Source: Basidiobolus meristosporus CBS 931.73
Taxonomy: Eukaryota > Fungi > Basidiobolomycota
Reading direction: 5' to 3'
Length of the DNA stretch: 64,000 nucleotides
Assembly (NCBI GenBank): GCA_002104905.1
Contig: MCFE01000032.1
Span: forward strand, 124,001 to 188,000
The notes below the pieces were generated by a model. The model had not been told where the DNA came from. It was given only the letters and a program-made list of their open reading frames with translations, and ran no database searches. Numbering within the stretch: the first letter of the stretch is position 1; every line of letters begins with the position of its first letter. The position numbers and the translations under genes are program-made. Positions 1 to 22,240 of the stretch are shown in pieces.

Positions 1-2614
1 CAGACCCTTTCCACCGGTGTTGCCGCCCAAGAGGGTCACGAGAACGGATACATGGAGCAATTGCAGGAAGCCAAAAACATTGCCTCCCAATCGTCAACCG
101 AGGAAGAGCAAACCAAGCTACGCATTTCGCACATGAAAAAGGAGCTCAAGGAACTCCAGCCCAAGACCGCCAAAGCCAAAAAAGAGAACAGCACCGCTAT
201 CAAGGAGTTGGAAGCGGCCCAGCAACAAATCAAGAAGCTGGAGAGCCAAATCCAAAAACTGAATTGGGATCCAGACACCCAGGCGAAACTATTGAAGGAG
301 AAGTCGGAGTTGAAGTCCAAGATTGATTCCCTTGAAGATGAGGTGGAAACCATGTCTTCCAAGCTCTCTGGTCTCGAGTTTCAGTATGCAGATCCCACAC
401 CCAACTTCGATCGCTCCCAAGTGAAGGGTCTGGTTGCCGAGTTGATCAATGTAGAGGATGAGCAAAAGATCGCCTCGACTGCTTTAGAGATTTGTGCTGG
501 TGGGCGACTCTATAACGTGGGTACACTAGGATTTCGCTATGCTCACGATCGTTTACTTACCTAGATTCTATCCTTGTAGGTTGTTGTCGACACTGAGGTT
601 GTCGGTAAGCAATTGCTTCAAAAGGGAAAGCTTCGTCGTCGTGTGACCATCATCCCATTGAACAAGATTGCTGCGTTCAAAGCGTCTGCTGAAAAGATCG
701 CCACCGCTCAGAAGCTTGCACCTGGTAAGGTGGACCTTGCTTTGAACCTCATCGGTTACGACGACGAGGTCACCGCAGCTATGCAGTTCGTTTTCGGCAA
801 CACGCTCATCTGTAGAGGTAAGTTGCTGCGGGATTCTTGCATTACCAACCATCGGCTAAGTTTATGCACCACTAGATGCCAAGTCTGCTGAGAAGGTCAC
901 ATTTGACAAGAATGTGCGGATGAAGTCAGTTACCTATGATGGCGATGTCTATGACCCATCGGGCACTTTGCAGGGTGGCTCCAAGCCCTCGTCAGGCGGT
1001 ATCCTGATGAAAATGAACGCATTGAAAGAGGCCAAAATGGAATTGGCTAGTCTTCATGCTAAGCTTGATTCGGTGAACAAGAAGCTACAAGCGCTGCAGC
1101 AAGAAGGAGCGAAGTATAAGGAAGCCAAGCAGCAGTTGGACCTTAAGATCCACGCCGCCACTCTTCTCGAAGAGCAGCTAAGCAAAAGCTCGCACGCTCA
1201 AGTCCTCAAACGCGCCCAGGATTTGGAGAATGAGGTCCAGGATCTCGAGAAGGCGATCACTCAATGCCGTGAAAAGCGCAGCGATGCGCTGAAACGCGTA
1301 AAAGAGCTTGAGGTGGAAATGGAGGAATTCAAAGAAAACAAAGATTCGAAACTGGAAGACATGAGAAAGAAGCTGTCCAACGCGAAGAAGACCCTCTCCA
1401 AATCCACCCAGGTGGTTAAGAACATGCAGCGCGAGGTCCAAACCATGCAACTAGAAATCGAGCAAACCGAGGCTGAGATCAGCAGCTGCAGACAACAGAT
1501 TTCGGATGCCGATCAATCGATCGAGGAATACAGCGAGCAGGAGAAAACACTGAAGGAGGAGCTCATTGACATCAAGAATGCCCTTGACAACGCTCAGGAC
1601 AAGTTGGATCGCGAGATGGAAACCATGAAAAACTATGACAGTGAGATTCGTGAACTCGAGGCGCTATCGAAGAGTAAGGCCGCCGAAATGGCCGATTCTC
1701 AGCTTGAGCTTCAGAAGCTTTCCCACGAGCTCGAGAGGTACGATAAAGAACGCGAGACTGCGGCGAGAGTGATCGCGGAGCTTGAGAAGGCCCATGAATG
1801 GATCGTCGATCAAAAGCAATTCTTTGGCAAAGAGAACACTCCATACGATTTCGAGCAGCACGATGTCAAGGATGCCCAAAAGAAGCTGAAGAAGCTCGAG
1901 CTTGAGCACGACAAGCTACGTAAAAAGATCAACATGAAGGTCATGAACACCATGGATAGCGTAGAAAAGAAAGAGGCTGCTTTGAAGCATATGCTTCACA
2001 CCGTCCGCAAGGACAAAAGAAAGATTGAGGAGACCATCAAGGAGCTCGACAACTACAAAAAGGAAGCGCTCGAGCGAACCTGGAAGAAGGTGAACGTCGA
2101 TTTCGGAGCGATCTTTGGGGAGCTTCTCCAGGGAAATTCGGCCAAGCTTGAGCCACCTGAGAACCAGACTTTAATGGAGGGACTGGAGGTCAAGGTGTGC
2201 TTGGGTGGCGTTTGGAAACAGAGTCTTACCGAACTCAGTGGTGGACAGCGCTCGCTCATTGCCTTATCCTTGATCTTGGCATTGCTGCAGTTCAAGCCAG
2301 CTCCCATGTATATCCTTGATGAGATTGATGCCGCGCTGGATCTGTCCCATACACAGAACATCGGTCAACTGTTCCGTAGTCGCTTCAAGGGATCCCAATT
2401 CATCGTAGTCTCCCTGAAAGAAGGAATGTTCAACAACGCGAATGTGTTGTTTAGAGCACGTTTCCGTGACGGCATTTCCATGGTTGAGCGACATGCCCAA
2501 AAGCAATCGAGGACCCCCGGAAGAACCAGCCAACGTCCAAGCATGGGCACTCCGGTATCCAAACCAGTCCCTCGCAAGGTGACGAAAAGAGCTCGTGTTG
2601 CCAGTGACTCCTAA
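1..2614 (+). CDS. SMC2: Condensin subunit SMC2, 3' part (5' end outside window); introns 517-579 and 818-875
   Basis: Hinge GRLYN|VVVDT...RRVTIIPLNKI, long coiled coil, signature LSGGQRSL, Walker B PMYILDEIDAALD; GT-AG introns restore the frame. Confidence 0.96.
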
Positions 2615-2874: not shown

Positions 2875-5375
2875 ATGGTACGCAAGTCACAACACCATCG
2901 CGGCAATGTCAAAAGAAAAGGTACCGGGACGAACCTGGGAAATGCCAAGAAAAACAAGCCCATGAAGTTTGGCCAGCTTTCCAAAAGCCAGAAAGAGCAG
3001 CTTGTGGAGTACGGTGAACTTGATCCTACGAAGGAAGACGAGGACGACCTCGAATCCAAGTAAGTGTTCGTCACCCGACCGGGCTGCCCACTGGTTGCTA
3101 AATGCTCTTATAGGATCTTTCGTAAAGTAGTTCGAGAGGAGGATTTGGATGAGGAACGCAAACGTCAGTACGAAGATTCGGACCAAGAAGAGGACGATGA
3201 GGAGCAGGAAGAGGAATGGGAGAAGCCATCCTCTTACAGCAAGCTAGTCAATTTGTTGAAGAAAAATTCCCGTAACGCCGACTTTTACAAACGGCAGAAG
3301 CTAGAGGAGGAAGGCTTGGAGGATGATTTGAGCGAGGAGGAGCAAGACGAGTTGGATCTAGAGGATGGTGAAAGTACGTAGTTGTTAAAGCAACGTAATT
3401 TACATGATTTTGATAAGGTGCTAATTCTCTCCCCTCGCGTAGCACTTGAGCTAACTGCCGAGCAAGCCGAGGAATTCAGAAAAAAATACGGTGATGCCGT
3501 GTTACAAGAATTGCAAAACGGTCATCTCTCCGATGATGATGATGTTGAGGGAGAGGAGGGAGAAGAGGAAGAGGAAGACGTAAGCGAAGTGGAGGAAGAT
3601 GACAACGGGGAAAACGAGCATTATTCGGCGGAAGAGGATGAAGATGACGAGGTTGCCGAAGCCGGCGACTTCTACGAGCAACATTTCGGTGAGCATGTAC
3701 ATGAAGATTTCAACCATCGAGTTGCTATTGCGGAGCAGAAGCAATGGAAGCTAAACTGCCGAAATGACACCTTGCTCAATCAAGTCATGTCATATAGTTT
3801 GGAAGAAGCCACCAACACGGAAGCAGAAGTTCCGACCAAGAACCCCTCTGCTGGATTGGAGGAATTCAAAATCAAGCAGAGACTTCATGAGCCCTGGATC
3901 AAGTCGAAGGCGAGTTCCCCTGCCCAAGAGAGCAGCTACAACAAAGATCTCACCGACCTGCAGTATCTCCTTTATAAGGAAATGCAGCAATACAAAGACA
4001 TCGTGTATACGAATCGCTCGCTGGAGAACAGCGAAGAAATCCGCCGACTCTACTGTCTTCATGCCATCAACCATTCTTACAAGACTAGAGATAGAATTCT
4101 CAAAAACAGCATGAAGATCACTGCTGCTCAAAACGAAGATAAGGATATCGGTGAAGTCAAAGATCAAGGCTTTACACGACCCAAGGTTCTGATTGTCGTT
4201 CCATTTCGTAATGCAGCCCTTAAGATCATCGACACTATCATCGAGCTCTCTGGTACCACCCAGCAGGACAACAAAAAGCGACTGAGTAAAGAATTCGGGG
4301 TCCCCCCAGAGGAGATTGAGGTTGACACCTCCAAGCCAGCCGACTTCAACGACATATTCACCGGCAACCCAGACGATTGCTTCCGTGTTGGCATCAAATT
4401 CACTCGTAAAACCATGAAGATCTATTCGGACTTCTACTCCTCCGATATCATTGTCGCTTCACCCCTTGGCTCCGACTGATCATTGGAACCCAAGAGGATA
4501 AAAAGAGAGACTTTGACTTCCTGTCCTCTATCGAGCTGCTGATCATGGATCAGACCGATGTCTTCCTGATGCAAAACTGGGAGCACGTCGAGCATCTCTT
4601 TGACCACATGAACCTGATCCCCAAGGACTCTCACGGATGTGATTTCTCCAGAGTTAAGGGCTGGTATCTGGATGGTAGATCGAAATACCTTCGCCAGACG
4701 CTCTCTTTCTCCAGCTTTTTGTCGCCCGAAATCAACGCCATGTTCAATAAGCACTGTAAAAATATCCAAGGAAAGCTGAAGATCAAAAAGGCCTACGAGG
4801 GGTCCATCTACGATGTCATTCCTCAGGTGCAGCAAGTCTTCACCCGTATCCCATGCAAGAGCGCGGCAGAAGCAGCGGATGTTCGCTTCAGACATTTCAT
4901 CGACAAAGTGGTGCCCACCCTGAGAAAGTCGGCGCACTCGCAAGACCACACCCTAATTTTCATCCCGTCCTACTTCGATTTTGTCCGCGTGCGAAACTAC
5001 TTCACTGAGCACAACTATTCCTTCGTCCAGTTGTGCGAATACACCAGCAACTCCGATATCTCCCGCTCCCGCTCGAACTTCTTCCACGGCCGACAAAGCT
5101 TCATGCTTTACACCGAGCGGTTCCACTTCTTCAGACGCTACAATATTCGTGGTATCAAGCACATCGTCTTCTACGGCCTACCGGAATACCCGCAATTCTA
5201 CTCAGAAATGCTGAATTGCCTGACACTTCCAACCCATGACAATTCAACCTTCAACGATTGGACCTGCACCTCGGTGTTCACTCGCTACGATCAACTCAAG
5301 CTAGAGCGCATTGTTGGAACCAAGCGGGCCCAACGCATGACCTCTGGCGAGAAGGAGGTGTTCATGTTCGCGTAA
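2875..5375 (+). CDS. UTP25: U3 snoRNA-associated protein 25 (UTP25/DEF); two introns near 3060 and 3380; apparent 1-nt frameshift near 4470
   Basis: Acidic N-terminus; motifs DQGFTRPKVLIVVP, FYSSDIIVASPLG, DFLSSIE, QTDVFLMQNW, YTERFHFFRRYNIRG. Confidence 0.93.
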
Positions 5376-6837: not shown

Positions 6838-8043
6838 ATGAGTAAATTACCGAGTGGACGGCTAGCGACAGTATTTACTTATGTGGAGCAAGGCCAGCTA
6901 CCAACCTGCTCTTTGGTTTGCAAAGAGTGGGCGAAGGCTGCCTCTCCTTTACTGTGGAGAAAGCCTCGCTTTGGTGGACGGTTCCTCACCCGCGCACAAG
7001 CTTTCGAAACATTTCTACGTTGCTTGACGATCTGCCGTCCAGAGATTCTAGATCTCATTCGTGTCATCAATCTAAATAAATTCGAGGAAAGCTTGTACAG
7101 CGAGCTTCCGGAGGACTGGTTAAATACCGTTACGTCACACTGCCCCAAGCTGGAAGAGCTACATGTGGCTGAGAGTAGTATCTTTTCCTCTACCTCTCTC
7201 AAACGTGTCAAGAACCGACATCCTCTACTGAGGGTTATCAATTTAACGAACTGTAAAAACATCGGTAGCAACGGCTTCATGCTTCTTGGTCGTATGTTCC
7301 CCAATCTTCTGCAACTTCTAGTGAGCGGATGTGCTGGACTAAACGAGAAAACGTTATCCCAACTCGTTTACTTGTGCGACGATTTGCAAAGGCTGGAGCT
7401 TGCACACTGCCCTGGCCTTACGGATAACTGTTTGCACGCAGTGGCCAAGTTCGGCAAAGGAAACATTCAAGAGCTTGACCTCACGGGGAACGTTTATTTG
7501 ACTGACAAGACGTTACAATCCATCTCTATGTATTGTTGTCGGTTGAAGTCTCTGACCTTTCGAGAGTGCCAGTTGATAACGCCAAAAGGCTTGGAGTATC
7601 TGACCCAAGGATTGAACAGTCACTTGGAGGCGCTGGATGTATCCTTTTGTCGTGCTTGCCCGCTCGATGATTCAATATTGAATCTGCTCTCCGCGAAACT
7701 GTCGAACCTTAGCAACTTCACCCTCTCTTTCCCACAAATCAACCTCGCCAAACGAGGGATCAACTCGATCATCACCTGCCTTCAAGGATTTGCCAGGTTG
7801 CAACACCTCACCATCCACTTCATTCCTGAGAACGTTTCCCTCGAATTCCTCAAGGGAGTGATTGAAAACTGTAAGCAGCTCAAGGTGATTACGCTGTACA
7901 GACAAGCTTATACGTGTGACTACATTTTTGGCTTTTATTCCAAGTCGAACCATTCCGAAATGATCCATGAGGAGAACATCCGTGCACTGCTCCAAGACCA
8001 CCCGAGGCTCCAGATCCATCTCAAGCGAGAGGAGATGTATTGA
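6838..8043 (+). CDS. F-box/leucine-rich-repeat protein (FBXL-like), intronless, 401 aa
   Basis: F-box-like LPSGRLATVF...CSLVCKEW...LLWR followed by cysteine-containing LRRs (LxxLxLxxCxxLTD). Confidence 0.88.
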   Translation: MSKLPSGRLATVFTYVEQGQLPTCSLVCKEWAKAASPLLWRKPRFGGRFLTRAQAFETFLRCLTICRPEILDLIRVINLNKFEESLYSELPEDWLNTVTSHCPKLEELHVAESSIFSSTSLKRVKNRHPLLRVINLTNCKNIGSNGFMLLGRMFPNLLQLLVSGCAGLNEKTLSQLVYLCDDLQRLELAHCPGLTDNCLHAVAKFGKGNIQELDLTGNVYLTDKTLQSISMYCCRLKSLTFRECQLITPKGLEYLTQGLNSHLEALDVSFCRACPLDDSILNLLSAKLSNLSNFTLSFPQINLAKRGINSIITCLQGFARLQHLTIHFIPENVSLEFLKGVIENCKQLKVITLYRQAYTCDYIFGFYSKSNHSEMIHEENIRALLQDHPRLQIHLKREEMY

Positions 8044-8196
8044 ACCCGGCTGCCATCTTCTACGCCTATCTGCATGTATCGCAATTTTGAAAGGGTCCAA
8101 ATAAAGCGAGTTGGTGGAATTATGCATGACTTCCAATCTAGTTGCTATAAACGACGTTAATCACTCTGGGCCTTGCTGGTGAATGGTTAGTCCCAC

Positions 8197-9711
8197 TTAC
8201 ATGATACAATTGGCGTGGTGACGCTTGGGCTTCTTTCTAATTTTACATGCCACACGGGTGGATGCAGCTTGGTGTTTGTCTTCGTGCACATCTGATACAG
8301 AGGTGGCTGGTGGTTGCTCTACCTGTGCGTGGTTGGCCATTTCTGCTGGTGGCTGGTGGGTTGATTGTTGTGTTTGTGGTGGTTGCTCCGAATACGTCTG
8401 TGTTGATGGATCGTTCTTGTGGTAAATATTGGACATGGACCTGGATTTCGATGCTGATATTGATGCTGATGTGCTATACAGCCTACGCAGCTGCTGCACG
8501 GACTTTCCCGAGGAGTTGCGGAGTTGGGGCTTGGTGATCGATTGAGGCGCACTTGGCAAGCTGGCAGTGCTGACCGTCGAAGGATCGAGGCGGTGATTTT
8601 CGTGAAATTTCGGAAGTGGGCTGGTCCATACGAGCGGCCCATCAAACGATGATTCTAGTTTGGAATCCACAATACATCTCCTCAGTGGCTTAGCGGGCGT
8701 TTCAAATTGAGGAGGCACCTTCACTGTGAATGGCTCTTCATTGTTCTCGATGTATCTGATGGACTTGTGTTTCAAATCATTTAATAGCTTTTCCGTCCGA
8801 TAGTCTTCATACAGTTGAAGATAGGTTTTCTCCTTTAGACTGTAGAGGTGGGTTTCAAGTAAAGCTTGCCTCAACGAAGACATATCGCTGTGGCTTGGGT
8901 TGAAGCATTCCACGATCCCCCAGCTGTATTCTCTTCCGAGAACTTTGGTACCGTCCTGTTTCCTAGGTTGCGACGGCTCACTCGAGACCACAGAGAACGG
9001 AAGCACGCGCCTCAGCCTTTGATTTTGTTGGTGAGACTCGTCGTCCTCGTCCTGGTCCTCGTCATCTGGGAAATCGTATGTTGGAATCGAGTGGTCCCTA
9101 AAGTCTCTCTGAATAACTGCCTTCATTTCTCTAAGCTCGGAAACTGTGTAACGGTCAGCTTTACCGATCACGGGGATAACGTTCACGTATTTGGAGAGCT
9201 TTTTTGCAAAGGCCAACTCTGCCTCCGAGAGCCGGACCAGTCCGGGTTGGACGAAGAACAGGCATGCGTGGACCTGCTCCTCCTTGGGCCTCGTGCTTCG
9301 GCTCAGCCTTGTTTCCTAGAAAAACCGGGTTAGAACGGTGGCAAACTGGACCCACGAGAGACTGCTAATAGAGACCTCCTGAAATCTAAGCAATAAGAGC
9401 CTCTTTACGTACTCCAAGACTGGACCCTCCCGCCCCTCTTCTAACGCTTGATGCTCCTCAAATCCCGGGGTATCTATGAAGTTCAGCACCAGGCTGGTTC
9501 CTTGGCTGACGGTGGTGACTTTCCGGGAGACGATTTCTTGAGTAGAGGGGTACCGATGGAACGGGGTTTGAGCCTCATGATCGACATGAGGCTGGAGGGA
9601 ATCTAGGAAAGTATTGACGAAGGAGGACTTTCCGGACCCAGAAGCCCCGACCACCATGACATTGAATAGGGTTGGGGGAGTTTTTCTTCGGCTACTTGAA
9701 CTTCTGGCCAT
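8197..9711 (-). CDS. Divergent septin GTPase with low-complexity C-terminal tail; intron(s) near 9320-9375
   Basis: G1 NVMVVGASGSGKSSF, G3 FIDTPG, VHACLFF, G4 NVIPVIGKAD, VLPFSVV, GREYSWG, HSD motifs. Confidence 0.88.
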
Positions 9712-10565
9712 GCCCCGAATCACACTCAAGGTAGAGGAGTCTCAGAGAGAAGGGAATAGAACTGCAGTAGACGTACAGCCATTGTTAATTTATTCCCTGT
9801 CGGGGATTGAGTTATTGTCAAGGCTTACCAAAATGGGCGGAGAAAAGGATATGATTTCGGCGAGGATTCGATGGTAATACTGTGCTCAATGTCCCCTTCA
9901 CCTCAATGAAAATTCGACTAATACGGCCGGTATCAAAGATCCCTCCATGGTTTGGGCAAAAACGGGTATTCCGCCACGGTGGACAAGGATATGGATCCGA
10001 ATGAGGTAACGTTCAGGACTCGTTTTCGTGACCTGGCTCACCAGGCCAAAGATTTGCTTGGGCATCGATGACTGACGTGAGTATCTTGTTGCGAATTACC
10101 TTTGCTCCATTTCGTCAGCCAATCTCGAGGCCCGCAACAAGGACAATAGTGCATAGGTGGTACCACAAGCCTCTATTGATCCAGCTTACGGTCAATACAC
10201 GCTCCGCTGGTCACACCGTTGAATCAGCTACGTGATCCTGATAGTGGTCGTTGATGTAGACATACCGTAACTTGAACATTATTAAATTTCTCAATTTCAC
10301 ATGCATTCACTCTGATTCCAACCAAGTACCCATCAATGCCGGCACATCCTCTAATTCATCCCCGTGCCTGTCAATTGTGGAACTTCAGCTGGCTGAGAAG
10401 GCATTTATTATGACCAGTAAGGCTAGGTTGACAAATGAATATTCAATATCGATCTGTCGGGAAGTTGGGCAGTTCTAAATAATGTTCAAAGAGGCGGATT
10501 TCGCGAGGGATTATAGCGGGGGGTTCTGTAATGCAGGAATGGGGAAGGTATTGCGGTGGTTGGGG

Positions 10566-10855
10566 TTAAAGTTGTACAGTACTTTCTTCGTCTTCTCGTT
10601 GGAACTCATCCTGTGGAGCAAAGTTGGGTTAGTGCCGAACGGCCAAATATTGCCCAGAAAAGGGGAGATTACCGGATCGTAGATGACACGGATGATCAAC
10701 GAGCAACTGGGACAACGGGCGATCTCCTCACCGTCATACAAATCCTCCAAGGTGATCTCGAAACGATCCCCGCAAGGGCAAGGGTAGTGGTAGACCTCGT
10801 TTTCCTCGTCGAATTCCAAATCTTCGATCTCCACTTCGTCGTAAAAGGAGGTCAT
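10566..10855 (-). CDS. DPH3: Diphthamide biosynthesis protein 3 (CSL zinc finger); exons 10855-10673 and 10610-10566
   Basis: YDEVEIEDL...YPCPCGDRF...[14 protein letters not shown]; a 62-bp GT-AG intron gives an acidic tail [14 protein letters not shown]. Confidence 0.96.
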
Positions 10856-11210: not shown

Positions 11211-13356
11211 TCATAAATGACCGTCATTCACATATTCAGGGAAGGTGCTATCAACGACACCCAAATGTAAAATCCGATTCCCAGATTGGCACACTGGATC
11301 GACATTCTTTCCGATCACGATCCCATCTTCCGGCGCATAATAGGTCGCCTCCAGGTCCCCAAAGATGTTGTGAAGGTAGGCAATGGGCTCATTCTTCTTG
11401 ACCCAGGTGTTCACGTCCGGAAGCACAGACAGAATCCCTCCAGAGGGGGCAAAGATCCAGTACTAGGCTTGATCAGAGTCTGCATGCAAAGATGAGGAAG
11501 AAAGCAGTACGTACACTCTTGGAGCACACCACGGGATCGTACTCGGGATGGTCAGGCTCGTTCTCCACCATCTGGAGATGCGAGATGATGTTGGTGACCC
11601 CCAGCAGTGCGTTCTTCACGAAGCGCTTTTGGAAGCGAGATGGATCTCCGATCTCCACTGGGGTGCGGGTTAGCTGTAACGTAAACGTCGATCTGGTCCC
11701 ATCAAAGGAGACTAACCTGTAATGGCCGGAATCCCTCTTTCCATTGCTGCACCACGAAGTGAGCCATCGGGACTCGTGTTATGGACAATAATCTTGAATC
11801 AACCAATGTAAGTCTCCACTCCAGGTTCCCCACATAGTAGAGAAGCCGACAAACCTGCGGGTTCTGAAGAGTCGCCATTCGTTGCGTGTTGATGTCGGTC
11901 ATGTTCGCACGGACATAGAGGGAGTTCACTCGACCTTTGCTTGCCGTGTGCAAATCCAGCAGATAATCAAAGTGGGATACGACCCGCTCCATCAGGTTGT
12001 AGGCATAGACTTGGGATGTGGAGCCGTTCTTCTTTCTAAATCGAAGGTCAGAAAGAAGCGAATCCGGGATCAAACGATTAAAGGTACCCTGGCATTAGTC
12101 GATTGAGATCGGTCCCGTCACTGAAGGTTCTTTGGCTTCGCAAATATCCAGGGGCATTGGCCACTGGCACGGCCACCACAATCCCGTGTAATGCATCACA
12201 CTCCAACTCGCGAAACAGTCGATGAATCAATGGGATGCCGTTCAGTTCGTTTCCGTGAAGCGCAGCGGTGATCCCTAGCGTAGGGCCGGGTTTCACTCCC
12301 TATTCGTTGGAGCATTAGGATGCTGTGAGGGTAATGAGAAACACCAACTTACCTTAGCGATAATCACAGGAACCTTGATGGGTAGGTTGAGCCCATCCTC
12401 CGAGAGAGCCACCCAAAAACGATGCACCTGACCACTGGGAAGTGATTGGAGATCCAAGGCGGAGACGGTGGGGATCTCCGAAGGAACCACGTCCAGGTTT
12501 CTCTTGGGTTCAAGGGGAGCTACGGGAACTCTCTTACGCCAAACCTGGTGTTCATCATGTGAGTCTAGCTTTCTGCGGTCCATCCATCCGTTGAAACGTA
12601 CCTGTCTGGCCTCGTGCAATAGATTCTCCTCCTTTTCCGAGTTGGCGAACTTTTTTGTCGTGATTTCGGGCCAGAATTCTTTGCCCCAGGCAACGCCGAA
12701 ATGCTTATCGAACTTCTTCAGGATCTTCTGAAATCCAACGATGTTCGTTTGGGTGAACTCTAACGGAGGAGGGTGATTAAGTGCCGGAGTCTGGGGGAAA
12801 GAGTGCATGGCCGTCTACCTGACAGATACTCAAGCGTCTGCAGAAGTCTCGTAAAGTCTTTCTTCCTTGTGTCTCGAGTTAGAAGGTATTGCAGCAAGAA
12901 TGAAACGAGATAACCGTACCATTTCTCTTGGTTTTCGGGGGACAGATCCGGACTCCACTAGCGCGATACAGTTATTAACGCAATTCATGTTGACGTAACC
13001 AGATATGGCTCACCTGTGTCTTCAGAAGGTCCAGTTTGTCACTTGAATCCTTTTCCTTGCTCAGATACCTTTCCTCGACTTTATCCAACTCCGTGTTGAT
13101 GAGCGCCTCGAAATCGTGAGTGATTTTTGTCAACGCGGCGGGGTCTTTGTCATCCGCTGAGCAGGAGAATTGGCAAGAAGATGAGTGAAACCTCCGGGGA
13201 GTAATAACAGCGTTTGGAAAGGGTAGAGTGGAAGAGGAAACTACCTTCGTATTGTATTTCGGCATCCTTGATGAATTTTTTCAACTGCTTGTAGTCGATA
13301 TAGTAGATAGCCCAGGTAGGGATAGAGCGTAGAGCGAGCTGTTTGGCGAATTTCAT
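11211..13356 (-). CDS. SPX domain fused to a succinylglutamate desuccinylase/aspartoacylase (AstE/AspA, M14-like) domain; multi-exon
   Basis: SPX: MKFAKQL, YIDYKQLKK, NIVGFQKILKKFDK. M14-like: ALHGNELNG, DLNR, DLHT, VEIG, and C-terminal APSGG...APEDGIVIG. Canonical introns join both parts in one frame. Confidence 0.9.
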
Positions 13357-13942
13357 GGTGCGAAGCGAGACTCGGAACTTCTAGTAAAAGTAAGTGCGGT
13401 CCAGAAGGTGGCTGGCAAAAGTGGGCGTTGTAGTATGGTTCGTTCTATTCTGATATGTGAAGATAGAGGCCTCGTAATATCTGCTCACCAATCTTTTATT
13501 AACTTTACTTGACCCGTCACAGACTTATCTAACAGTCCCACTGATAGGGATTGAATTTAGCTGATTCGCAATGTGTGTCCGGGGAATCATTGGTTCTAAA
13601 TTGTCCACATTAGCATCAATTCCAAGATACAGTGTGTGGTGAAGCATGTGACTTCTTGGATGGGATTTGTACTCTTTCTATCTCATAAGTTCGTATGACG
13701 AGCGAATATATCCGAGTTAGAAGCCAACCAACCTACCAAAGAGTCTGCAACATTCAATTGGTCCAAGCTGGAGGGAAGCAATAGATTAAAAATCATCGAT
13801 GCTTGTTGGCATTGATTGCATGGAAATTTCCGGTTAATTTAAGGACAATACCCTTGGATTTCCTTTACAGTTCTGTACAAGTACTGTGTTTTTCTGTTCC
13901 ACCCAGTGTGCCAAACCTTACCCCTTGGTTGACTCTTCAACG

Positions 13943-14919
13943 ATGGGAAACTCCCAGGGAAAGCAAAAGAGAAAGATCACCAGCCAAGATAGAGCTATCC
14001 TGGATCTCAAGATCCAGCGAGACAAGCTCAAACTTTACCAGAGAAAAGTGAGCAGACTGAGTTGAACGTGTCCCTCTTTTGGAAACCTTTATTGAACCCA
14101 AATTCTTCCTCAATCAAGATCCAGACCGTATTAGATAGGGAGGTGGAGATTGCGAAGCAACAGCTGCAAGCAGGGAACAAGCGACGCGCTTTGTTGGCGC
14201 TCAAGAAAAAGAAATACCAGGAGCAGTTGTTGGAGAAAACGGATGGACAGTTGCTCAACCTTGAGGAGCTGGTTGGTTGGACTCCCTTTTCTATGGTGAA
14301 GTTGTGCCACTCAGTTGTTTTCCCTTGCACAGGTCAATTCCATAGAGTTTGCTCTGGTTGAAAAGGAAGTTTTGGCTGGTTTGAGTTCCGGCAATGAAGT
14401 GCTTAAGGAGATTCATCAAGAGATGTCCATTGACGCCGTTGAGAAGCTGATGGATGAGACGGCCGACGCTATTGCTTACCAGAACGTTGGTTAACCCCGG
14501 TTGTTCGTCACGCAGGTCAAAATGAGCTCACCTTTGGTTCTTTAGGAAATCGAGGAATTGTTGAGTGGCAAGATAACCGAAGAGGACGAGGAAGACATTC
14601 TACGCCAACTTGACGAGATTGAGAAGCAGGCGGTACGTAAAATGCCGAGTTGTACAGAGTGTATTTGGAGTACTGATATGTATGACTTGACAGATTGATG
14701 AACAAATGGACGTTTTGCCCCAAGTCCCTGAAAACAAGTTGCCTGAACCACAACCCATTGAAGGTAAACCACCAATCAAGCAAGGTACATTGATTATGAT
14801 GTCTTATTTATCATATGTGTATAGAAGACGAGGAGGAGGAGGAGGAGGAGAAAGAGGAAAGGCCAGAGCCTGCGAGAGTCAGGGCTCCCAAGAAAGCTGA
14901 ACCTATGCTTGCTGCTTAA
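13943..14919 (+). CDS. VPS20: ESCRT-III subunit Vps20/CHMP6; multi-exon
   Basis: MGN N-myristoylation start, QDRAILDLKIQRDKL, ALLALKKKKYQEQLL, SIEFALVEKEV, Snf7-family acidic tail. Confidence 0.93.
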
Positions 14920-15237: not shown

Positions 15238-18200
15238 TTACTTCTTGATCATGTTGAGAACATCGTCGAGGACATTCTCGGGATGGTCAGATTTGGGACG
15301 ACTCTTCCGTTGCAGGGTATTCAAGTTCGCTACCTGCGGCCGAAACTTCAACGGGCATTAGTAAATCGCTTTGCACGGACGAGATAGAGGTCATTACCTG
15401 TGCTTGAGACAACCTCTCTTTCACCGATAAGCTGCTTTCATCGGTAGGGGGCTTGCGGAATGGTTTCTAGGATGACTGATCTTAGCAGGGGGCCTTCATC
15501 CAAAAATGGGCTTGGTAACTTACTTTTGCAGCTGGAGGTTTGCTGGATGGTATGAACAAGGCATTGGATCTCTTCTTCGGTAGTGGAGGTCTATCCCCTG
15601 AGGGCATGTCCATTTTGGGCCGCTACATTACACAGTCCACTTAATAAATGCTAAAGATTGAACAAAGCAAATTGTACTTACTGGTCTCTTGGCGCTGGTT
15701 CCTTCTCGATCACTCTCTACTGAGGATGATCGCTCCTTTGTTCTGACTCTAATACCGGCTATGCCCTGGTATTTTGACGGGACGGAAGGAGAAGGGGACT
15801 TGCGATCACGGTCATGTTTCTCTGATTGATCCCCATTCTCCTCTTCACTAGTAATCATGGCTTCCACCTCTTTCACAGGCTCAAGCTCATCATTTTTGGT
15901 ATAGAATACCACGTCTTTTGTGACTGGTTCTTCTGCTGATGGGACGAGTAAGTTGGGAGGGAGTTTTCTGATCACTGATTTGCCAAAGAGTGGTAGATCG
16001 CACTAGCAAGAATCAAAGTATTCATCAGTCGTGAATTACTGATGGAACCATGGCAGTGAATATTACGTCAACAAAGCACTTTCTCTCTTGTGCGTCTTCA
16101 ACCAGTGGCCGCCAGTACTTATTCTCAAGAAGGGATTTGGAATTGCCCAAGATAAACAGAGAATAGCGAGCTCTCGTAAGCCCCACGTTCATTCTTCTGA
16201 TATCTGCTAAGAAGCCGATTCCTTTGGCTGGTGGAGGTAAAAAGCAACCATTGAATTTGGATATCATCGGAAGATCAATTACTGCAAACCGTGCCACTTA
16301 CGATTGCCAGCTCTCACACATGAGAATATAATAATGTCCTTTTCTTGTCCTTGAAACCCGTCCTATTCCCAGTATAGAGTGAATCGAAGATCCAAGTAGC
16401 TCAGAAAACACTTCTTACTTACGACAGTGTTAAAATCAATCACTTGGGTAATGGTCTGGCCAAATGCTGATTCGAATCTTCGTCGAAGCTCCCTAAGCTG
16501 CTGTTTGTAAGGAGTGATGATACCAATGCGGTTGGAAAACTAAACCAATGCTGAGAATGAGTAACGGGATCTACTGGGCAAGCGATGGACACGAACATCC
16601 TTACATTAATGGTAGGGAAAGCTTTGCAAAGGTGATGCACCAAAGCCACAGCGATCTCGGCTTCTTTCGTATTGTACAGGGATTTGCCCCGGCCGATCTC
16701 CTCTCTACCAGAGTGAACATTGAGGAAATTGTACGGAGCGAATTTTCGATTTTCGTGCCATTTTTGTGTTTTGATCTGGGCGAGATTAGGCCCATCGCGA
16801 AGCTTGGAGCCGTAAAAGAGCTTGCTAGGGAACGCACTGATCTCTGGGTGCATACGATACTGAATGCTGATTTCGGTCGTGCTTAGTGTCAATATTAATT
16901 CAACCAAATGCCTCTCTGACTAGAACCAACCTCAAAAGATGAACGGCGTCAGGACAGTGATTCTGGATTCGAACAAACAAACTCTGCTCGTAGCTATATG
17001 AGGCAGCCACCTGGGAAAGTACTGTTGGAGGAAGCTGATTCGGATCTACAAGCACGGCGGTTTAGGGAAGTGTATGGACCAGCAATTAACATTCAAAATT
17101 TACCTCCAACCAGCACGCATCGCCTGCAGCCGTACTTCAGGGGAATTAGCGAGCTCAACTCAATGGATTGGGCTGCTTCATCGATGATGACCGTCTCAAA
17201 ATCAACCGCCAAGCTTGTCAGTTGCTCGTGACCACTACCACTAAGAGTTGAACAAACAATATCTGCTTCGGTTAGAATCTTGGTGCGGATCTTCCTCTTA
17301 GCAATGTCCAGAGCTCTATAGCTGGTGCTCTTTCTGTCGTTTTCGCCATCCAATTGCTTGGCCAGATTCCATCGCTTAGAATTCAATTGCTTGACCTTGG
17401 CTTCCATGTCAGCGATAGCAAACGCATCGGTAGACCTGGACATCATATCCTTCAACTCGTCACGCTCTTTCACGATTGCCCTCATCTTCTCTTTGAGTTC
17501 ACTGGCAAGGCTGCTAGCATTATTAAGGTTCTTTTTGGACTTGCTATATTCCGAGTCTGGAGAGTTCATTTCTTTTTCGACCAGGTGTTCTAGCGACATT
17601 TCCTTGGCACTTGAGTTGATGCTCTCAAAGATTCCGATACGGACCACTTTCGGTTTGAAAGCTGCTCCGTTCGAATCTCGAATTCCATCCTTCAGACGTT
17701 TTACAAGCTCATCAACTGCAGCGTTACTTGGTGCGCAAACTAACACTTTCTTGGAAGAAGACGTTTCTTCAGTCCGGGTTTCAATTTTATCCGGATTTCT
17801 AGACGATAGAACGGCGCCAATAAGTCCCAAGATGGTTTTCGTTTTTCCTATGTAGACAAGAGGTCAGAGAGTGTCATGCCAGTTAGGTGCCTATTGATTG
17901 TTACCTGTTCCTGGAGGACTAGAGCCAGATTCGAATATTCAAGTTAACAAAATGCAAATGAGGTCATCCAAACATGAAATTTACGAACCCTTGGATTAGA
18001 CTAAATCCCTGTTCTCGTCGTAGTACATGAAGAATAGCTTCAGCTTGGGGCTGGTTAACTAGATATGTTTTCATACACTTCTCGACGATGTCGTCATTCA
18101 ACGAAGGAGGTGAGCTGCTCTTGGCATTCAGAACATCGTCGCATAAATTGTAGTAGCCTATGCTCTGCAACGCGGAGTACTCACGATGAACAGTCGTCAA

Positions 18201-21200
18201 ACTAACAGATACCGATTAGCAAATAAAGTGAACATTTGGCTGAATATTGTTTGAACCAACCTAAAGAGTTTCGAGGCTTTCCAGATCGTCTTGGGGTTGA
18301 TTGCCAGTAGGGTTTCGGTGTTCTCTCTGCCAAAGGCCGATCTAACTGTGACTTGGGTCATGTCACGCCCAATATTACTCGACTGAACCTTGCACAGAAA
18401 TGACTTGTCGGTGATTTTTGCGCCATTGATACCGCTGGATTTCTGGCGAAATACATGAAGCAGATCATTTTCATTGATTCCTTGAGCGTCGGACGACGCA
18501 AGAGAAAGTGTGATGTCATGAAAACCATCGACCATCAAGCGGTTAACAACGGTACAATCCACAGCTTCCGAATCATTGAGCTCCTCCTTGGCTCGAACAA
18601 ACTGCTGCCAGCATTCCAATAGCAGTAAGGGCTCAAAGACATCGATATACTCTTCGGGAGACTCGAATACTTTGGGAACAGCTCGGATATCCGATTTGGA
18701 GATGTTTGCTGGTAAATCGCCGTTGTCATTATACTTCCAGCCAAAGATGAATTTGTGCAAATGGGAGAGATCCGGGGTAAGTCGGGCCTTCGTTTGATTT
18801 TCTGTCGCAATACGAGCTCTTCGTAACTCCAGCGGGTGCGCACGTAAATTTGGCAGATCGATCAACTTTATACCACGTCGAGGCTGATATTTTCTAGCCT
18901 CTGGTGGTTTTTGGTAGTCTCCGACGATATCAGCTAGACCACCCCCAGAATCTGAATCGTCGGAGTCACTGTCGCTATCTTTCTCGTGTTTTCCTTGCTT
19001 AGGAGTCTCAACTTTGTGTGCTGTACGATGATTGCTTACAGGAATACCATCGGGGGGTACGGTCGACATGGCTGGGCCACGCTTAACTGTAGGAGTGGGG
19101 CCATTCACCTTCGAGCTGGATTTATTGTTACTGGCTGCCACCAGCACAGAGCGATCCTTCTTGAATTCAGAGCGCATTTGCTTCAGCATGGAGCCCGATT
19201 TCTTCTGTGTTTTGGATGCAGGCTTGGTACCTTTCTTGTTGAGCGCAGGGTAGAGCTGCTTACTACTAGGTGCCGAAGCAGGTGTAGCAGTTGAAGAGCT
19301 CGAAGGTTTGCGTTTGGAGGCGTCGCTTGATATCTTAATGGTGACAGTGTTAGACTCATCAAACGTATGCCAAAGTGTATCGAATGCATCATCCGGAAGA
19401 TCCCCAAAATCGTCATTATCTTTAGTCAAATCGATATATTGCTCTTCCTCGCCCGCTTTCGGATGGTCTTCGGTTTGCTGGTCGGCTTCGACCTCCTCCA
19501 CGGATTGTACTTCGTCTTCTGAAGCTGGAATGTGGATGGTGTCGTCAGGTGATTCATCAACCATAATTGGTTTGGGTTGGTTGTTCAAAGTCTCGAGTCC
19601 CTCGTATCCGGATATAGCAACGAACAGATTGGTCCTTTGGTTCTCGGTAAGGGAGGACTGGAAGCCTGCTAGATTCATAGCGATCCCCTCCAGCTTACTA
19701 TGCAAAGATCGGTCCAAGGTAGCCCCTTTTTGTCGCGTACGGTCAAGTATATTCAGCACCAGATTGAGGGTTAGCTCCCGAAGTTGATCGTTGGTAACAA
19801 AAAACCATTTGATCAAGGAGGATAGCGATGCCTTTAGCGGATCTGCGGTCAGCGCTGTTCCTTCCTGAAGAGTGACGCCCTCGTATCGATCGTGGAATCT
19901 CAAGACAGACATAGTAGCATTGAAGACCGCACTCATTGTCGCAATCACGTCGTCTTTTCGATACTTCTCCGCCCAATTCAAGCCCCATTTGAATGCGACT
20001 TTAATGGCATCCCAGCAGCAATTCCACAGCTTCACCATTATCTCCTCGAAACTTTTGGAGGTCAAAGATTCGATATCCAATGGGCCCCCTTGCTCCTCGC
20101 ACGCTGCTGATATTATCTCTTGAATCAGCTCAAAGAGATCGTGTGCATAACTGTAGGTGTTACATCCACTGCGTGTGAGGATGGTAAACTCTTCCAGGAC
20201 TTCAACAATCGAGGTTAAGCAGCTTTCAGGCTGAAGTGCAAAGAGTGCCCGTATGGAGGCAGTTTTGTTGTCCGCACTTAGGGCGACACCTACCATGACA
20301 TAGCCCGTAGATCTCAGTTCAGCATCGCAGGATATCAAGAATCTGGTGAGGGCGCTGGGGACACCGTCGCTTTGAAAGAAATTCTGAAGATACAGCTCGC
20401 TGCTCTCGGAGAAATGTGCTAGGTAATGGTGCGAGAGGGTCCTTAGAAATTGAACACCCTCGACTACAAATCGGTTGACGCTATCTGCTGAGACATTTTG
20501 CAGCACTTTGATCAACTCCGATAGATCAATTAGCGAAATGCGCGAGAAATAATAGAAAATCGCCTGGTGCGTAAGCTGATGTAACCGGGCCGGATCTCGG
20601 CTGCAAAGGATTGACCAAATTCGTCTACAGAGCTTCATTGGCTTGTTGCTCTGATCAAACGGTTTGTTCTGGCAAGCGTAGAGATACGCTTGGTAGAGCA
20701 GCTCCACGTCGTGCTTGATGGACAGTTCGAGGATTTGAAGAGCGTACTTCTGAACATCCTGAACTGGAGTTCCTAGACCTGTGGAGCAGTCTACTATATG
20801 GTTTCCATGGACTTCGATCAGGTAACTGGTGGTAGAAAATCCCTCGTCATCACAGTAGGGAAGTAATAAGGTTACAGCGACATCTCTACAGTATGTTCTA
20901 TATTCGTCGGGGTAGGCTGGGCTTTGAAAACCAGTAAATAGGGCATTCACGATCCCTATCAAGAGTTCGCTCCAGAATGTGGTCTCCTTAAATGACTCTA
21001 TGAAGCCGCTTATCCACTCTAAAAAGATATCAATCAGCTTGCGGCTTTGTGATTGATGCTGGCTACCAGATTTGCTAACATATTGTATTCTTTCTACAAT
21101 GTTGGACACAAACATTGGGTTCTCCATAAAACTTTTGAACAGGAGTAGCGGAGCTCTTGCGTATTCGTAGCCTGGCACTTGTTTCCAAATCCTGCTCTTC

Positions 21201-22240
21201 AGACGTAGAAGTAGAATTGAAAACGCTCGCAACATTTCAATAAGATACTCGGTTTTTAGTGGCAGCTGGCTGAGAATCAGATCCCGAATGCCTGCGCCAT
21301 TTGCAGCATAGAAATGCTCAAACGCATCAGTGGTGAGCGAGGATACCAAGAGTCGAAACGCCTTCCAATGCTCGCTTCGAAAGGTAGTAAGATTGTATCC
21401 CAGTGTATTGGGATCATGGCCTTTGACAAGCGATAGTATAATATTGGTATATTCAGAAAATGTCTCAAGGTCAATACAATCGATGGATGCGGGTGCTTGG
21501 TTCATGGTTTTTTGGGCCCAACGCCTTGCCCAATCGCTTTCGTGCACAAGCAAGATCATCACTCCGGGAAGTATTTTGGTCTCTAATTTGAGGGATTTCT
21601 TTCGCTGGATAATACCACAAAAGACTGTGATAAAAGCTTCGTCAATATCACTGCGCTTTAGATGTACGGGAACTTTGAATATCTCAAAGAGTGTGCACAT
21701 AACACGCTCGGTGATACTTTCTACTCTAACGATGTCTCCTGGCTGCTCCAGAGAGGAAAGCTGAGACATGTCCACTTTGGCCAACATGAGCATTTTTGTG
21801 ATTCGGTAAGCGTCCCATTCTTGAAGTGATTGGAAGAACAGGTTTACTGTGTCTTCAGAATATTTGGTCAGATATCTAAAATATTCGATTCAAAGTGAGC
21901 GCATTATCAACCGTGATTGCCAACAAACATGAAAGTACCTGGCGTGGAATTGGGCTTTGGTATTATGATATTCGTTTACACACATTTTGCATGTGCTTAG
22001 TTGCTCAGCCATTATATCTCGAAACTTCTGAATTGGAGTATTTGGGGCAATCGAAAATAGATGCAACAGTTCGGTGGTGATAGGCTTTAATAAAGGGTCG
22101 CACCACCAACACTTTGGGTGCTTGAGCAGATATGCAAGGCCTCTCTGCAATAGCTCATGTTCTTTAGATTCATCCTCTTGTTGTTGAACATCTTGGAGAA
22201 GCTGGTGTAGTGCTACTAGTTCAGGGTCAGCGGAGTCCAT
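15238..22240 (-). CDS. SEN1: Sen1/senataxin RNA-DNA helicase; multi-exon, 3' exon boundaries approximate
   Basis: Sen1 N-terminal domain with CxxC, LIQGPPGTGKT Walker A, VLVCAPSNAAVDE, VIIDEAAQ, QYRMHPEIS, RRMNVGLTRAR. Confidence 0.96.

Follow-up and report, generated by a model that had tools for sequence, protein, structure and literature searches.

The 64,000-nucleotide stretch of contig MCFE01000032.1 from the fungus Basidiobolus meristosporus CBS 931.73 that was analysed here (positions 124,001 to 188,000; hereinafter the window) contains a gene for a 517-amino acid (aa) protein in which an SPX domain (residues 1-172) is joined to a predicted zinc deacylase of the AstE/AspA type (residues ~190-517). 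SPX domains are eukaryotic receptors of inositol pyrophosphates (PP-InsPs). To our knowledge, every characterised SPX output handles phosphate, through transport, polyphosphate synthesis, glycerophosphodiester hydrolysis, inhibition of a cyclin-dependent kinase or ubiquitin ligation, and no characterised SPX protein carries a zinc amidohydrolase as its output domain. The full explanation that we favour, and consider fairly likely, is that the protein is an SPX-tied zinc amidohydrolase that cleaves a small amide made by a conserved partner ligase, denoted fam1 below, and is switched by PP-InsPs. Such an SPX-controlled zinc amidase would carry PP-InsP signalling into amide or peptide-type metabolism.

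The coding region of the SPX-deacylase gene occupies positions 13356..11211 of the minus strand, from the ATG at 13356 to the stop codon at 11213-11211, and comprises 11 exons separated by 10 GT-AG introns of 52-88 nucleotides (nt). The exons were assembled from three-frame translations, and intron 3 (12866-12919), which is easily read through because it is in frame and free of stop codons, was recognised by comparison with relatives. Along its entire length, the predicted product is 100% identical to ORY04733.1 (P0165; JGI model K493DRAFT_345472 of the same strain), which is labelled "hypothetical protein" and, in UniRef, "SPX domain-containing protein"; the gene is real and annotated in public data but unnamed and unstudied. 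The same genome encodes a paralogue, ORX93562.1 (P0167; 516 aa, 90.7% identical), and in B. ranarum the fusion gene is present in full at least once, alongside fragments of further copies. The B. ranarum orthologue KAK9767646.1 (P0031) aligns without gaps at 93.6% identity, and 24 of the 33 substitutions between the two Basidiobolus orthologues fall within aa 1-141, so that evolution is faster in the SPX half than in the catalytic one.

Both halves look functional at the sequence level. The Pfam SPX profile (PF03105) recognises exon 1 alone with 38.2 bits (cut-off 27.8) and the orthologue P0031 with 62.5 bits, and this half also has sequence matches to the SPX domains of a Chaetomium protein (5ijj), Vtc3, Vtc4 and XPR1. 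Two groups of ligand-contacting residues have been defined for SPX domains, a phosphate-binding cluster (Tyr and Lys on helix alpha2, Lys on alpha4) and a lysine surface cluster (three Lys on alpha4) (PMC9911596). In HMMER alignments with SPX chains of known structure, Y22, K26 and K129 of the B. meristosporus protein correspond to Y22, K26 and K130 of yeast Vtc3, and K125, K128 and K132 correspond to K126, K129 and K133. All six PP-InsP-contact residues are present, and each is kept in 60-65 of the 67 fusion proteins aligned, in an alignment where only 13 of the ~170 SPX positions reach 90% conservation; as judged from this alignment, the six contacts for inositol hexakisphosphate (InsP6) or PP-InsPs are under strong conservation across the fusion family.

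The deacylase half is recognised by the Pfam profile AstE_AspA_cat (PF24827), with 55.9 bits for the piece encoded by exon 7 (cut-off 25) and 112.8 bits for P0031. The predicted zinc ligands H245, E248 and H330 and the general base E388 align with the respective residues of DoeB and of the structures 3cdx and 3na6, and R287, D294, N296, R297, D328, H330, R336, N338, Y341, H365, N366, R374, E388, R497 and H500 are kept in all 67 rows of the alignment.

An AlphaFold2 (AF2) model was built on P0031 with the 67 family sequences and has a mean predicted local distance difference test score (pLDDT) of 89.9. It comprises an SPX helical bundle (residues 1-171; helices 3-10, 13-18, 22-38, 43-85, 92-134, 138-147 and 156-171), a disordered linker (175-187, pLDDT <50), an alpha/beta domain and an all-beta C-terminal domain (429-503). 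The predicted template modelling score (pTM) is 0.63, and the relative orientation of the SPX and catalytic halves is therefore undefined. In Foldseek searches against the PDB, the N-terminal part matches the SPX domain of XPR1 (8tyu) with a template modelling score (TM) of 0.84, and the C-terminal 320 residues match DoeB/EutE (6twm, TM 0.83), 3na6, 3cdx and 2qj8, with the two-domain fold of DoeB, 3na6 and 3cdx reproduced at TM 0.82-0.84. Weaker matches of the C-terminal part include CphZ, AstE, MpaA, aminoacylase 3 and classical M14 carboxypeptidases. In the model, residues 515-516 of the C-terminal tail and residues 192-193 just after the linker form isolated two-residue strands; these may pair with each other. 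The earlier note on this DNA, drawn from the sequence alone, had described one spliced open reading frame (ORF) with intact SPX ligand-binding clusters and an M14-like domain with intact zinc ligands, an Asn-Arg motif, a catalytic Glu and a C-terminal segment resembling a barrel-sandwich, which corresponds to the beta domain. This description holds throughout, from the 11-exon minus-strand gene model, identical to that of JGI and with a single frame across the junction, to the six Vtc3-aligned SPX contacts and the catalytic features seen in the alignment and the Foldseek matches; the motifs that it quoted are all in place (YIDYKQLKK at aa 19-27, KILKKFDK at 125-132, HGNE at 245-248, NR at 296-297, DLH at 328-330 and VEIG at 387-390). 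The coordinates of these features are collected in Table 1.

Table 1. Features of the SPX-deacylase gene, neighbouring genes in the window, and eukaryotic loci with an adjacent fam1 gene.
Feature	Sequence	Positions	Strand	Remarks
Exon 1, aa 1-37	window	13245..13356	-	SPX N-terminus, MKFAKQL...; Pfam SPX 38.2 bits, profile positions 1-33
Codons Y22 to K26	window	13279..13293	-	SPX phosphate-binding cluster, helix alpha2; Y22 kept in 62/67 and K26 in 65/67 family members
Exon 2, aa 38-85	window	13014..13156	-	long SPX helix; weak Pfam SPX match, profile positions 137-172
Exon 3, aa 86-97	window	12920..12957	-	boundary set by colinearity with P0001, P0031 and P0165
Intron 3, 54 nt	window	12866..12919	-	in frame, stop-free; retention would add 18 aa to the SPX domain
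Exon 4, aa 98-113	window	12819..12865	-	gene model
Exon 5, aa 114-166	window	12602..12759	-	SPX helix alpha4 with lysine cluster, and alpha5-6; Pfam SPX profile positions 309-330
Codons K125, K128, K129, K132 (K..KK..K)	window	12704..12727	-	helix alpha4; lysine surface cluster and third phosphate-binding residue; kept in 60-64/67
Intron 5, 57 nt	window	12545..12601	-	in frame, stop-free; retention would add 19 aa to the SPX domain; spliced out in relatives
Exon 6, aa 167-230	window	12353..12544	-	SPX end, flexible linker (aa ~173-189), first deacylase strands; holds the domain junction
Exon 7, aa 231-300	window	12088..12299	-	HGNE zinc site and NR motif; Pfam AstE_AspA_cat 55.9 bits
HGNE, aa 245-248	window	12246..12257	-	predicted zinc ligands His245 and Glu248; aligns to HGDE of 3cdx, DoeB and 3na6; 66/67 rows, one row gapped
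N296-R297	window	12099..12104	-	putative substrate-carboxylate motif; invariant in 65/65 eukaryotic sequences; R297 at 12099-12101
Exon 8, aa 301-361	window	11855..12035	-	DLH zinc ligand; Pfam AstE_AspA_cat 23.7 bits
DLH, aa 328-330	window	11948..11956	-	predicted third zinc ligand His330; invariant, 67/67
Exon 9, aa 362-386	window	11717..11792	-	gene model
Exon 10, aa 387-434	window	11515..11657	-	catalytic Glu (VEIG)
Glu388 (VEIG)	window	11653..11655	-	predicted catalytic general base; aligns to TELG Glu of DoeB and 3cdx; invariant, 67/67
Exon 11, aa 435-517 and stop	window	11211..11462	-	C-terminal beta domain and eukaryote-specific DGHL tail
D514-G515-H516-L517 tail	window	11214..11225	-	near-invariant in eukaryotic fusions, absent from bacterial relatives
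SMC-type ATPase	window	52-2614		neighbour gene
Utp25	window	3382-5375		neighbour gene
F-box/LRR protein	window	6838-8043		neighbour gene
Septin	window	8197-9216	-	neighbour gene
Dph3-type CSL zinc finger	window	10511-10855	-	neighbour gene
ORF starting MGNSQGK	window	13886-14065	+	no Pfam match
Sen1 helicase	window	about 16440-21793	-	neighbour gene
Deacylase	Balamuthia, L082	8001-10108		same strand as fam1
fam1	Balamuthia, L082	10586-12616		same strand as deacylase
fam1	eukaryote-like 629-kb contig, L083	4226-5914		divergent from SPX-deacylase gene
fam1	eukaryote-like contig L086, unrelated to the other two loci	6989-9233		divergent from SPX-deacylase gene

The fusion is widespread. A junction-spanning piece searched against 1.8 billion proteins yielded 28 representative clusters, and those tested at full length all have both domains; word-indexed searches seeded with the Ambispora and Balamuthia proteins listed more than 100 fusion proteins. 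The fungal carriers include Glomeromycotina (Ambispora, Geosiphon, Entrophospora and Paraglomus), Mortierellomycotina, Calcarisporiella, Jimgerdemannia, Kickxellomycotina, Entomophthoromycotina, many chytrids and, in Taphrinomycotina, Saitoella and four Pneumocystis species. Outside fungi, the fusion is present in Balamuthia, Plasmodiophora and Spongospora, and in Fonticula the catalytic domain is preceded by a long N-terminal region without a Pfam SPX match. No fusion from Mucorales or higher Dikarya was found among the matches listed. The B. meristosporus protein is colinear end to end with 67 fusion proteins, including the SPX-linker-AstE/AspA architecture and the D-G-H tail. Most lineages of early-diverging fungi share the fusion, which is conserved from chytrids to Pneumocystis, with its reduced genome, and extends to Amoebozoa and plasmodiophorid plant pathogens. 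A literature search across about 8.4 million full texts found no study of an SPX-deacylase fusion, in agreement with the statement of the earlier note that none was known to have been characterised, even though the architecture is visible in public databases. The domain combination as such is already known from these databases; what is new is an SPX-regulated protein, as predicted here, with a novel type of output domain, and an unannotated partner ligase.

In the maximum-likelihood tree of the catalytic domain (a careful search over 83 rows), all eukaryotes are on one side of a single branch (support 100/98) and the fungi form one clade (100/99), within which Taphrinomycotina, chytrid, Kickxellomycotina, Entomophthoromycotina and Mucoromycota groups are recognisable. 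The B. meristosporus protein is placed in the fungal clade next to B. ranarum, and Fonticula, Spongospora and Balamuthia branch outside it. The nearest prokaryotic relatives, with 50-55% identity, come from Saprospiraceae, Lewinellaceae, Haliscomenobacter and other Bacteroidota. Two features set the eukaryotic fusions apart from these relatives, the D-G-H-[LM] tail and Arg rather than His in the Asn-Arg motif: position 297 is Arg in 65 of 65 eukaryotic sequences and His in 75 of 82 Bacteroidota relatives. As far as this phylogeny goes, the fusion is old in eukaryotes and was passed down vertically from an early eukaryote, with later losses. The catalytic domain may have an ancient bacterial origin, as a sister to Bacteroidota, but the tree, in which the outgroup (P0022) is on a very long branch (2.68), does not fix the direction of any ancient transfer.

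These data bear on two alternative accounts of the fusion itself. The earlier note had suggested as a possible origin that a bacterial deacylase gene was acquired and then gained introns and an SPX module, and had named the catalytic-domain phylogeny in advance as the arbiter. A recent transfer into Basidiobolus of this kind would be compatible with the mainly bacterial distribution of the AstE/AspA family and with the Bacteroidota affinity of the nearest non-eukaryotic relatives. It is nevertheless to be rejected as extremely improbable, because the eukaryotic sequences form one clade whose branching tracks the species tree, down to an internal order of the fungal clade that agrees with fungal phylogeny, with representatives of Rhizaria and Amoebozoa, as well as Fonticula, outside that clade; moreover, in the window the gene is surrounded by housekeeping genes with similar G+C content. 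Equally, it is scarcely credible that the fusion is an artefact in which two adjacent genes were merged by a wrong gene model. Although the B. meristosporus model is known from genomic sequence alone, exon 5, which encodes the C-terminal SPX helices, and exon 6, which encodes the linker and the first deacylase strands, are read in a single open frame that stays free of stop codons even if intron 5 is kept, so the SPX-deacylase join does not result from splicing prediction. Furthermore, the independent JGI model is identical, the fusion is a single entry in transcript-derived EukProt records, the same architecture is encoded by single uninterrupted, intron-free ORFs in four metagenomic or Logan eukaryote-like contigs, and the more than 100 proteins that share it come from different phyla.

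With respect to substrate, the protein scores 64.8 bits against the DoeB equivalog (NCBIfam TIGR02994; cut-off 402.7), 24.9 bits against the aspartoacylase equivalog (NF002601; cut-off 180) and 20.6 bits against the AstE equivalog (TIGR03242; cut-off 305.65). By these profile scores, the SPX-linked hydrolase is a member of the AstE/AspA superfamily that lies outside all three equivalogs. The earlier note had suggested N-succinyl-Glu, N-acetyl-Asp or N-acetyl-2,4-diaminobutyrate (N-acetyl-DABA) as substrates, or a link to arginine metabolism; because the respective scores are so far below the cut-offs, these suggestions lack specific support. A better lead to the substrate of the deacylase is the conserved partner ligase, fam1.

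This ligase came to light through the gene context of the 80 closest bacterial loci (L001-L080). Upstream of the bacterial deacylase and on the same strand, two families recur, fam1 (~485 aa) and fam2 (~336 aa); the full order fam1-fam2-deacylase is found in 47 of the 80 loci (for example, L003:3529-6963), and most of the others are cut by contig ends. The operon is carried by Saprospiraceae, Lewinellaceae and other Bacteroidota. The fam2 protein is a GshB-like ATP-grasp ligase (GSH-S_ATP / RimK-type) and looks confined to bacteria. Sequence-profile searches with fam1 gave no Pfam or NCBIfam match and no PDB match below E = 0.08. However, its AF2 model (pLDDT 86.3, pTM 0.90) matches a putative gamma-glutamylcysteine synthetase (3k1t), glutathionylspermidine synthetases and eukaryotic glutathione synthetases; fam1 is therefore predicted to be an ATP-grasp-type amide ligase, a placement that comes from the predicted fold only. 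Taken together, the Bacteroidota operon looks like a module for the synthesis and turnover of a small peptide.

The association of fam1 with the deacylase extends to eukaryotes. In three eukaryotic loci (L082, L083 and L086), a fam1 homologue lies beside the SPX-deacylase gene, with 44-60% identity over the main aligned segments, and each of the three deacylases belongs to a different branch of the deacylase tree outside the fungi. The homologue in B. meristosporus, P0175 (K493DRAFT_314502), is on another scaffold. A search seeded with the eukaryotic fam1 identified homologues in Neoconidiobolus, Mortierellomycotina, Calcarisporiella, Ambispora, Entrophospora, Pneumocystis, many chytrids, Rozella and Mucorales, so that many of the fungal genera with the fusion have the ligase as well. 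In the fam1 tree, eukaryotes are split from bacteria on one branch (support 95), and fungi are supported at 100.

Based on the above observations, the following mechanism can be proposed. One polypeptide would combine the SPX domain, a flexible linker of ~15 residues and the AstE/AspA zinc amidohydrolase. The ATP-grasp-type ligase fam1, represented in B. meristosporus by P0175, would make a small amide, which is probably the substrate of the SPX-deacylase; the latter would act on a small acidic N-acyl amino acid or iso-peptide and hydrolyse the amide bond that neighbours its free alpha-carboxylate. Inositol pyrophosphates, as a readout of phosphate sufficiency, would bind the SPX domain and shift its packing on the catalytic domain or on the oligomer, thereby switching hydrolysis through altered access to the active site or an altered oligomeric state and tying amide turnover to phosphate status. 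The ligase and the amidase would thus constitute a build-and-break cycle for one metabolite, in which the breaking step is linked to phosphate status. The SPX-deacylase probably serves nitrogen or peptide-type metabolism and not the transport, storage or release of phosphate.

Several observations weigh against this proposal. SPX binding, hydrolase activity and regulation are all deduced from sequence and predicted structure, and the allosteric route is a conjecture given that the orientation of the SPX and catalytic halves is not predicted. No fam1 gene is found within 8-10 kb of the deacylase in the window, in P. jirovecii, Plasmodiophora and Fonticula, or in two further contigs. Mucorales and Rozella have the ligase and, among the matches listed, no SPX-deacylase, so the pairing of ligase and deacylase is not obligate. 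The GshB-like second ligase of the operon appears to be bacterial only. Finally, since the Bacteroidota have His where the eukaryotic proteins have Arg297, the two clades may use different substrates.

Two competing interpretations of how the protein works have to be considered in this light. The SPX domain might not gate catalysis but be a scaffold that helps with targeting or assembly; it could, for instance, bring a constitutive amidase to another SPX partner, a membrane or an oligomer. The unpredicted inter-domain geometry with its disordered linker, the crystallisation of catalytic-domain relatives as multimers (12 chains in 6twm, 6 in 3cdx) and the concentration of Basidiobolus substitutions in the SPX half are all consistent with such a role. 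However, few SPX positions are conserved and the six ligand contacts belong to them, which favours retained ligand binding over a bare scaffold and makes the scaffold interpretation rather unlikely. The other interpretation concerns the substrate: the catalytic domain could work on proteins as a carboxypeptidase does, trimming their C-terminal residues, and not on a small metabolite. The M14-like fold, for which Foldseek found carboxypeptidases D, M and O as well as MpaA (E ~1e-9 to 1e-10), and the assignment of the partner ligases to the ATP-grasp class, which includes the protein-tail ligases RimK and TTL, point in this direction. Against this, every top match, in structure as in sequence, is a small-molecule amidase (DoeB, CphZ, AstE and aminoacylase 3), and fam1 has more in common with the glutathione and glutathionylspermidine class of small-molecule ligases than with RimK; we therefore regard protein trimming as distinctly unlikely.

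The SPX-tied amidohydrolase acting on a fam1 product remains our preferred explanation, and it admits a bolder version that, as it stands, we hold to be doubtful. The two enzymes would form a eukaryotic cycle inherited together from a Bacteroidota-type operon, with the ligase building the amide and the SPX-gated zinc amidase breaking it on the PP-InsP signal. As a speculation, the amide could hold a basic amino acid or polyamine in masked form, whose release would supply the counter-ion for vacuolar polyphosphate in response to the signal that also turns on the VTC polymerase. Phosphate signalling would thereby gain an additional, new output that joins the phosphorus and nitrogen economies. 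The partner ligase offers a practical route to the metabolite, and the pairing gives context to two protein families that had no function assigned.

The neighbours of the SPX-deacylase gene in the window, among them genes for Utp25, a septin and the Sen1 helicase, are listed in Table 1. The neighbourhoods of the deacylase gene in Pneumocystis, Plasmodiophora and Fonticula have nothing in common. There is no Pho4-type E-box (CACGTK) in the 530-bp upstream region of the gene, and across the window this motif is not above chance (25 sites, 33 expected).

The proposed system can be compared with several known ones. The fungal SPX-coupled proteins (Vtc4/Vtc3, Gde1, Pho81, Pho87/90/91 and Syg1/XPR1) share with the protein described here the N-terminal position of the SPX domain, the same Tyr/Lys cluster and the K..KK..K arrangement. 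The outputs differ: Gde1 and Pho81 have the SPX-ankyrin-GDPD architecture and the Vtc proteins a polyphosphate polymerase, whereas here the output would be a zinc amidohydrolase. The closest relative in structure is DoeB/EutE, the N-alpha-acetyl-L-2,4-diaminobutyrate deacetylase (6twl, 6twm), which is the top match over ~321 columns. Its zinc ligands and catalytic Glu align with those of the SPX-deacylase, and both proteins have a C-terminal beta domain. However, the identity is only ~21%, DoeB has no SPX domain, and the SPX-deacylase gene lacks an ectoine-pathway context. Aspartoacylase (ASPA) and AstE belong to the same Pfam superfamily and use the same zinc and Glu chemistry, but the SPX-deacylase falls outside both equivalogs. 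With regard to the proposed metabolic logic, CphZ, the hydrolase of the cyanophycin dipeptide beta-Asp-Arg (8ein, 8eip), has the superfamily fold and cleaves an amide built by an ATP-dependent ligase, as suggested here; it is, however, more distant (~15% identity, TM ~0.68), and no cyanophycin synthetase is linked to the SPX-deacylase gene. The glutathionylspermidine synthetase/amidase of Escherichia coli (GspSA) likewise couples a ligase and an amidase that cycle one amide, and the predicted fold of fam1 resembles its synthetase domain. In GspSA, a single chain carries both activities, and its amidase belongs to the CHAP cysteine hydrolases and not to the zinc enzymes, so that the likeness is one of logic, the amidases themselves not being homologous.

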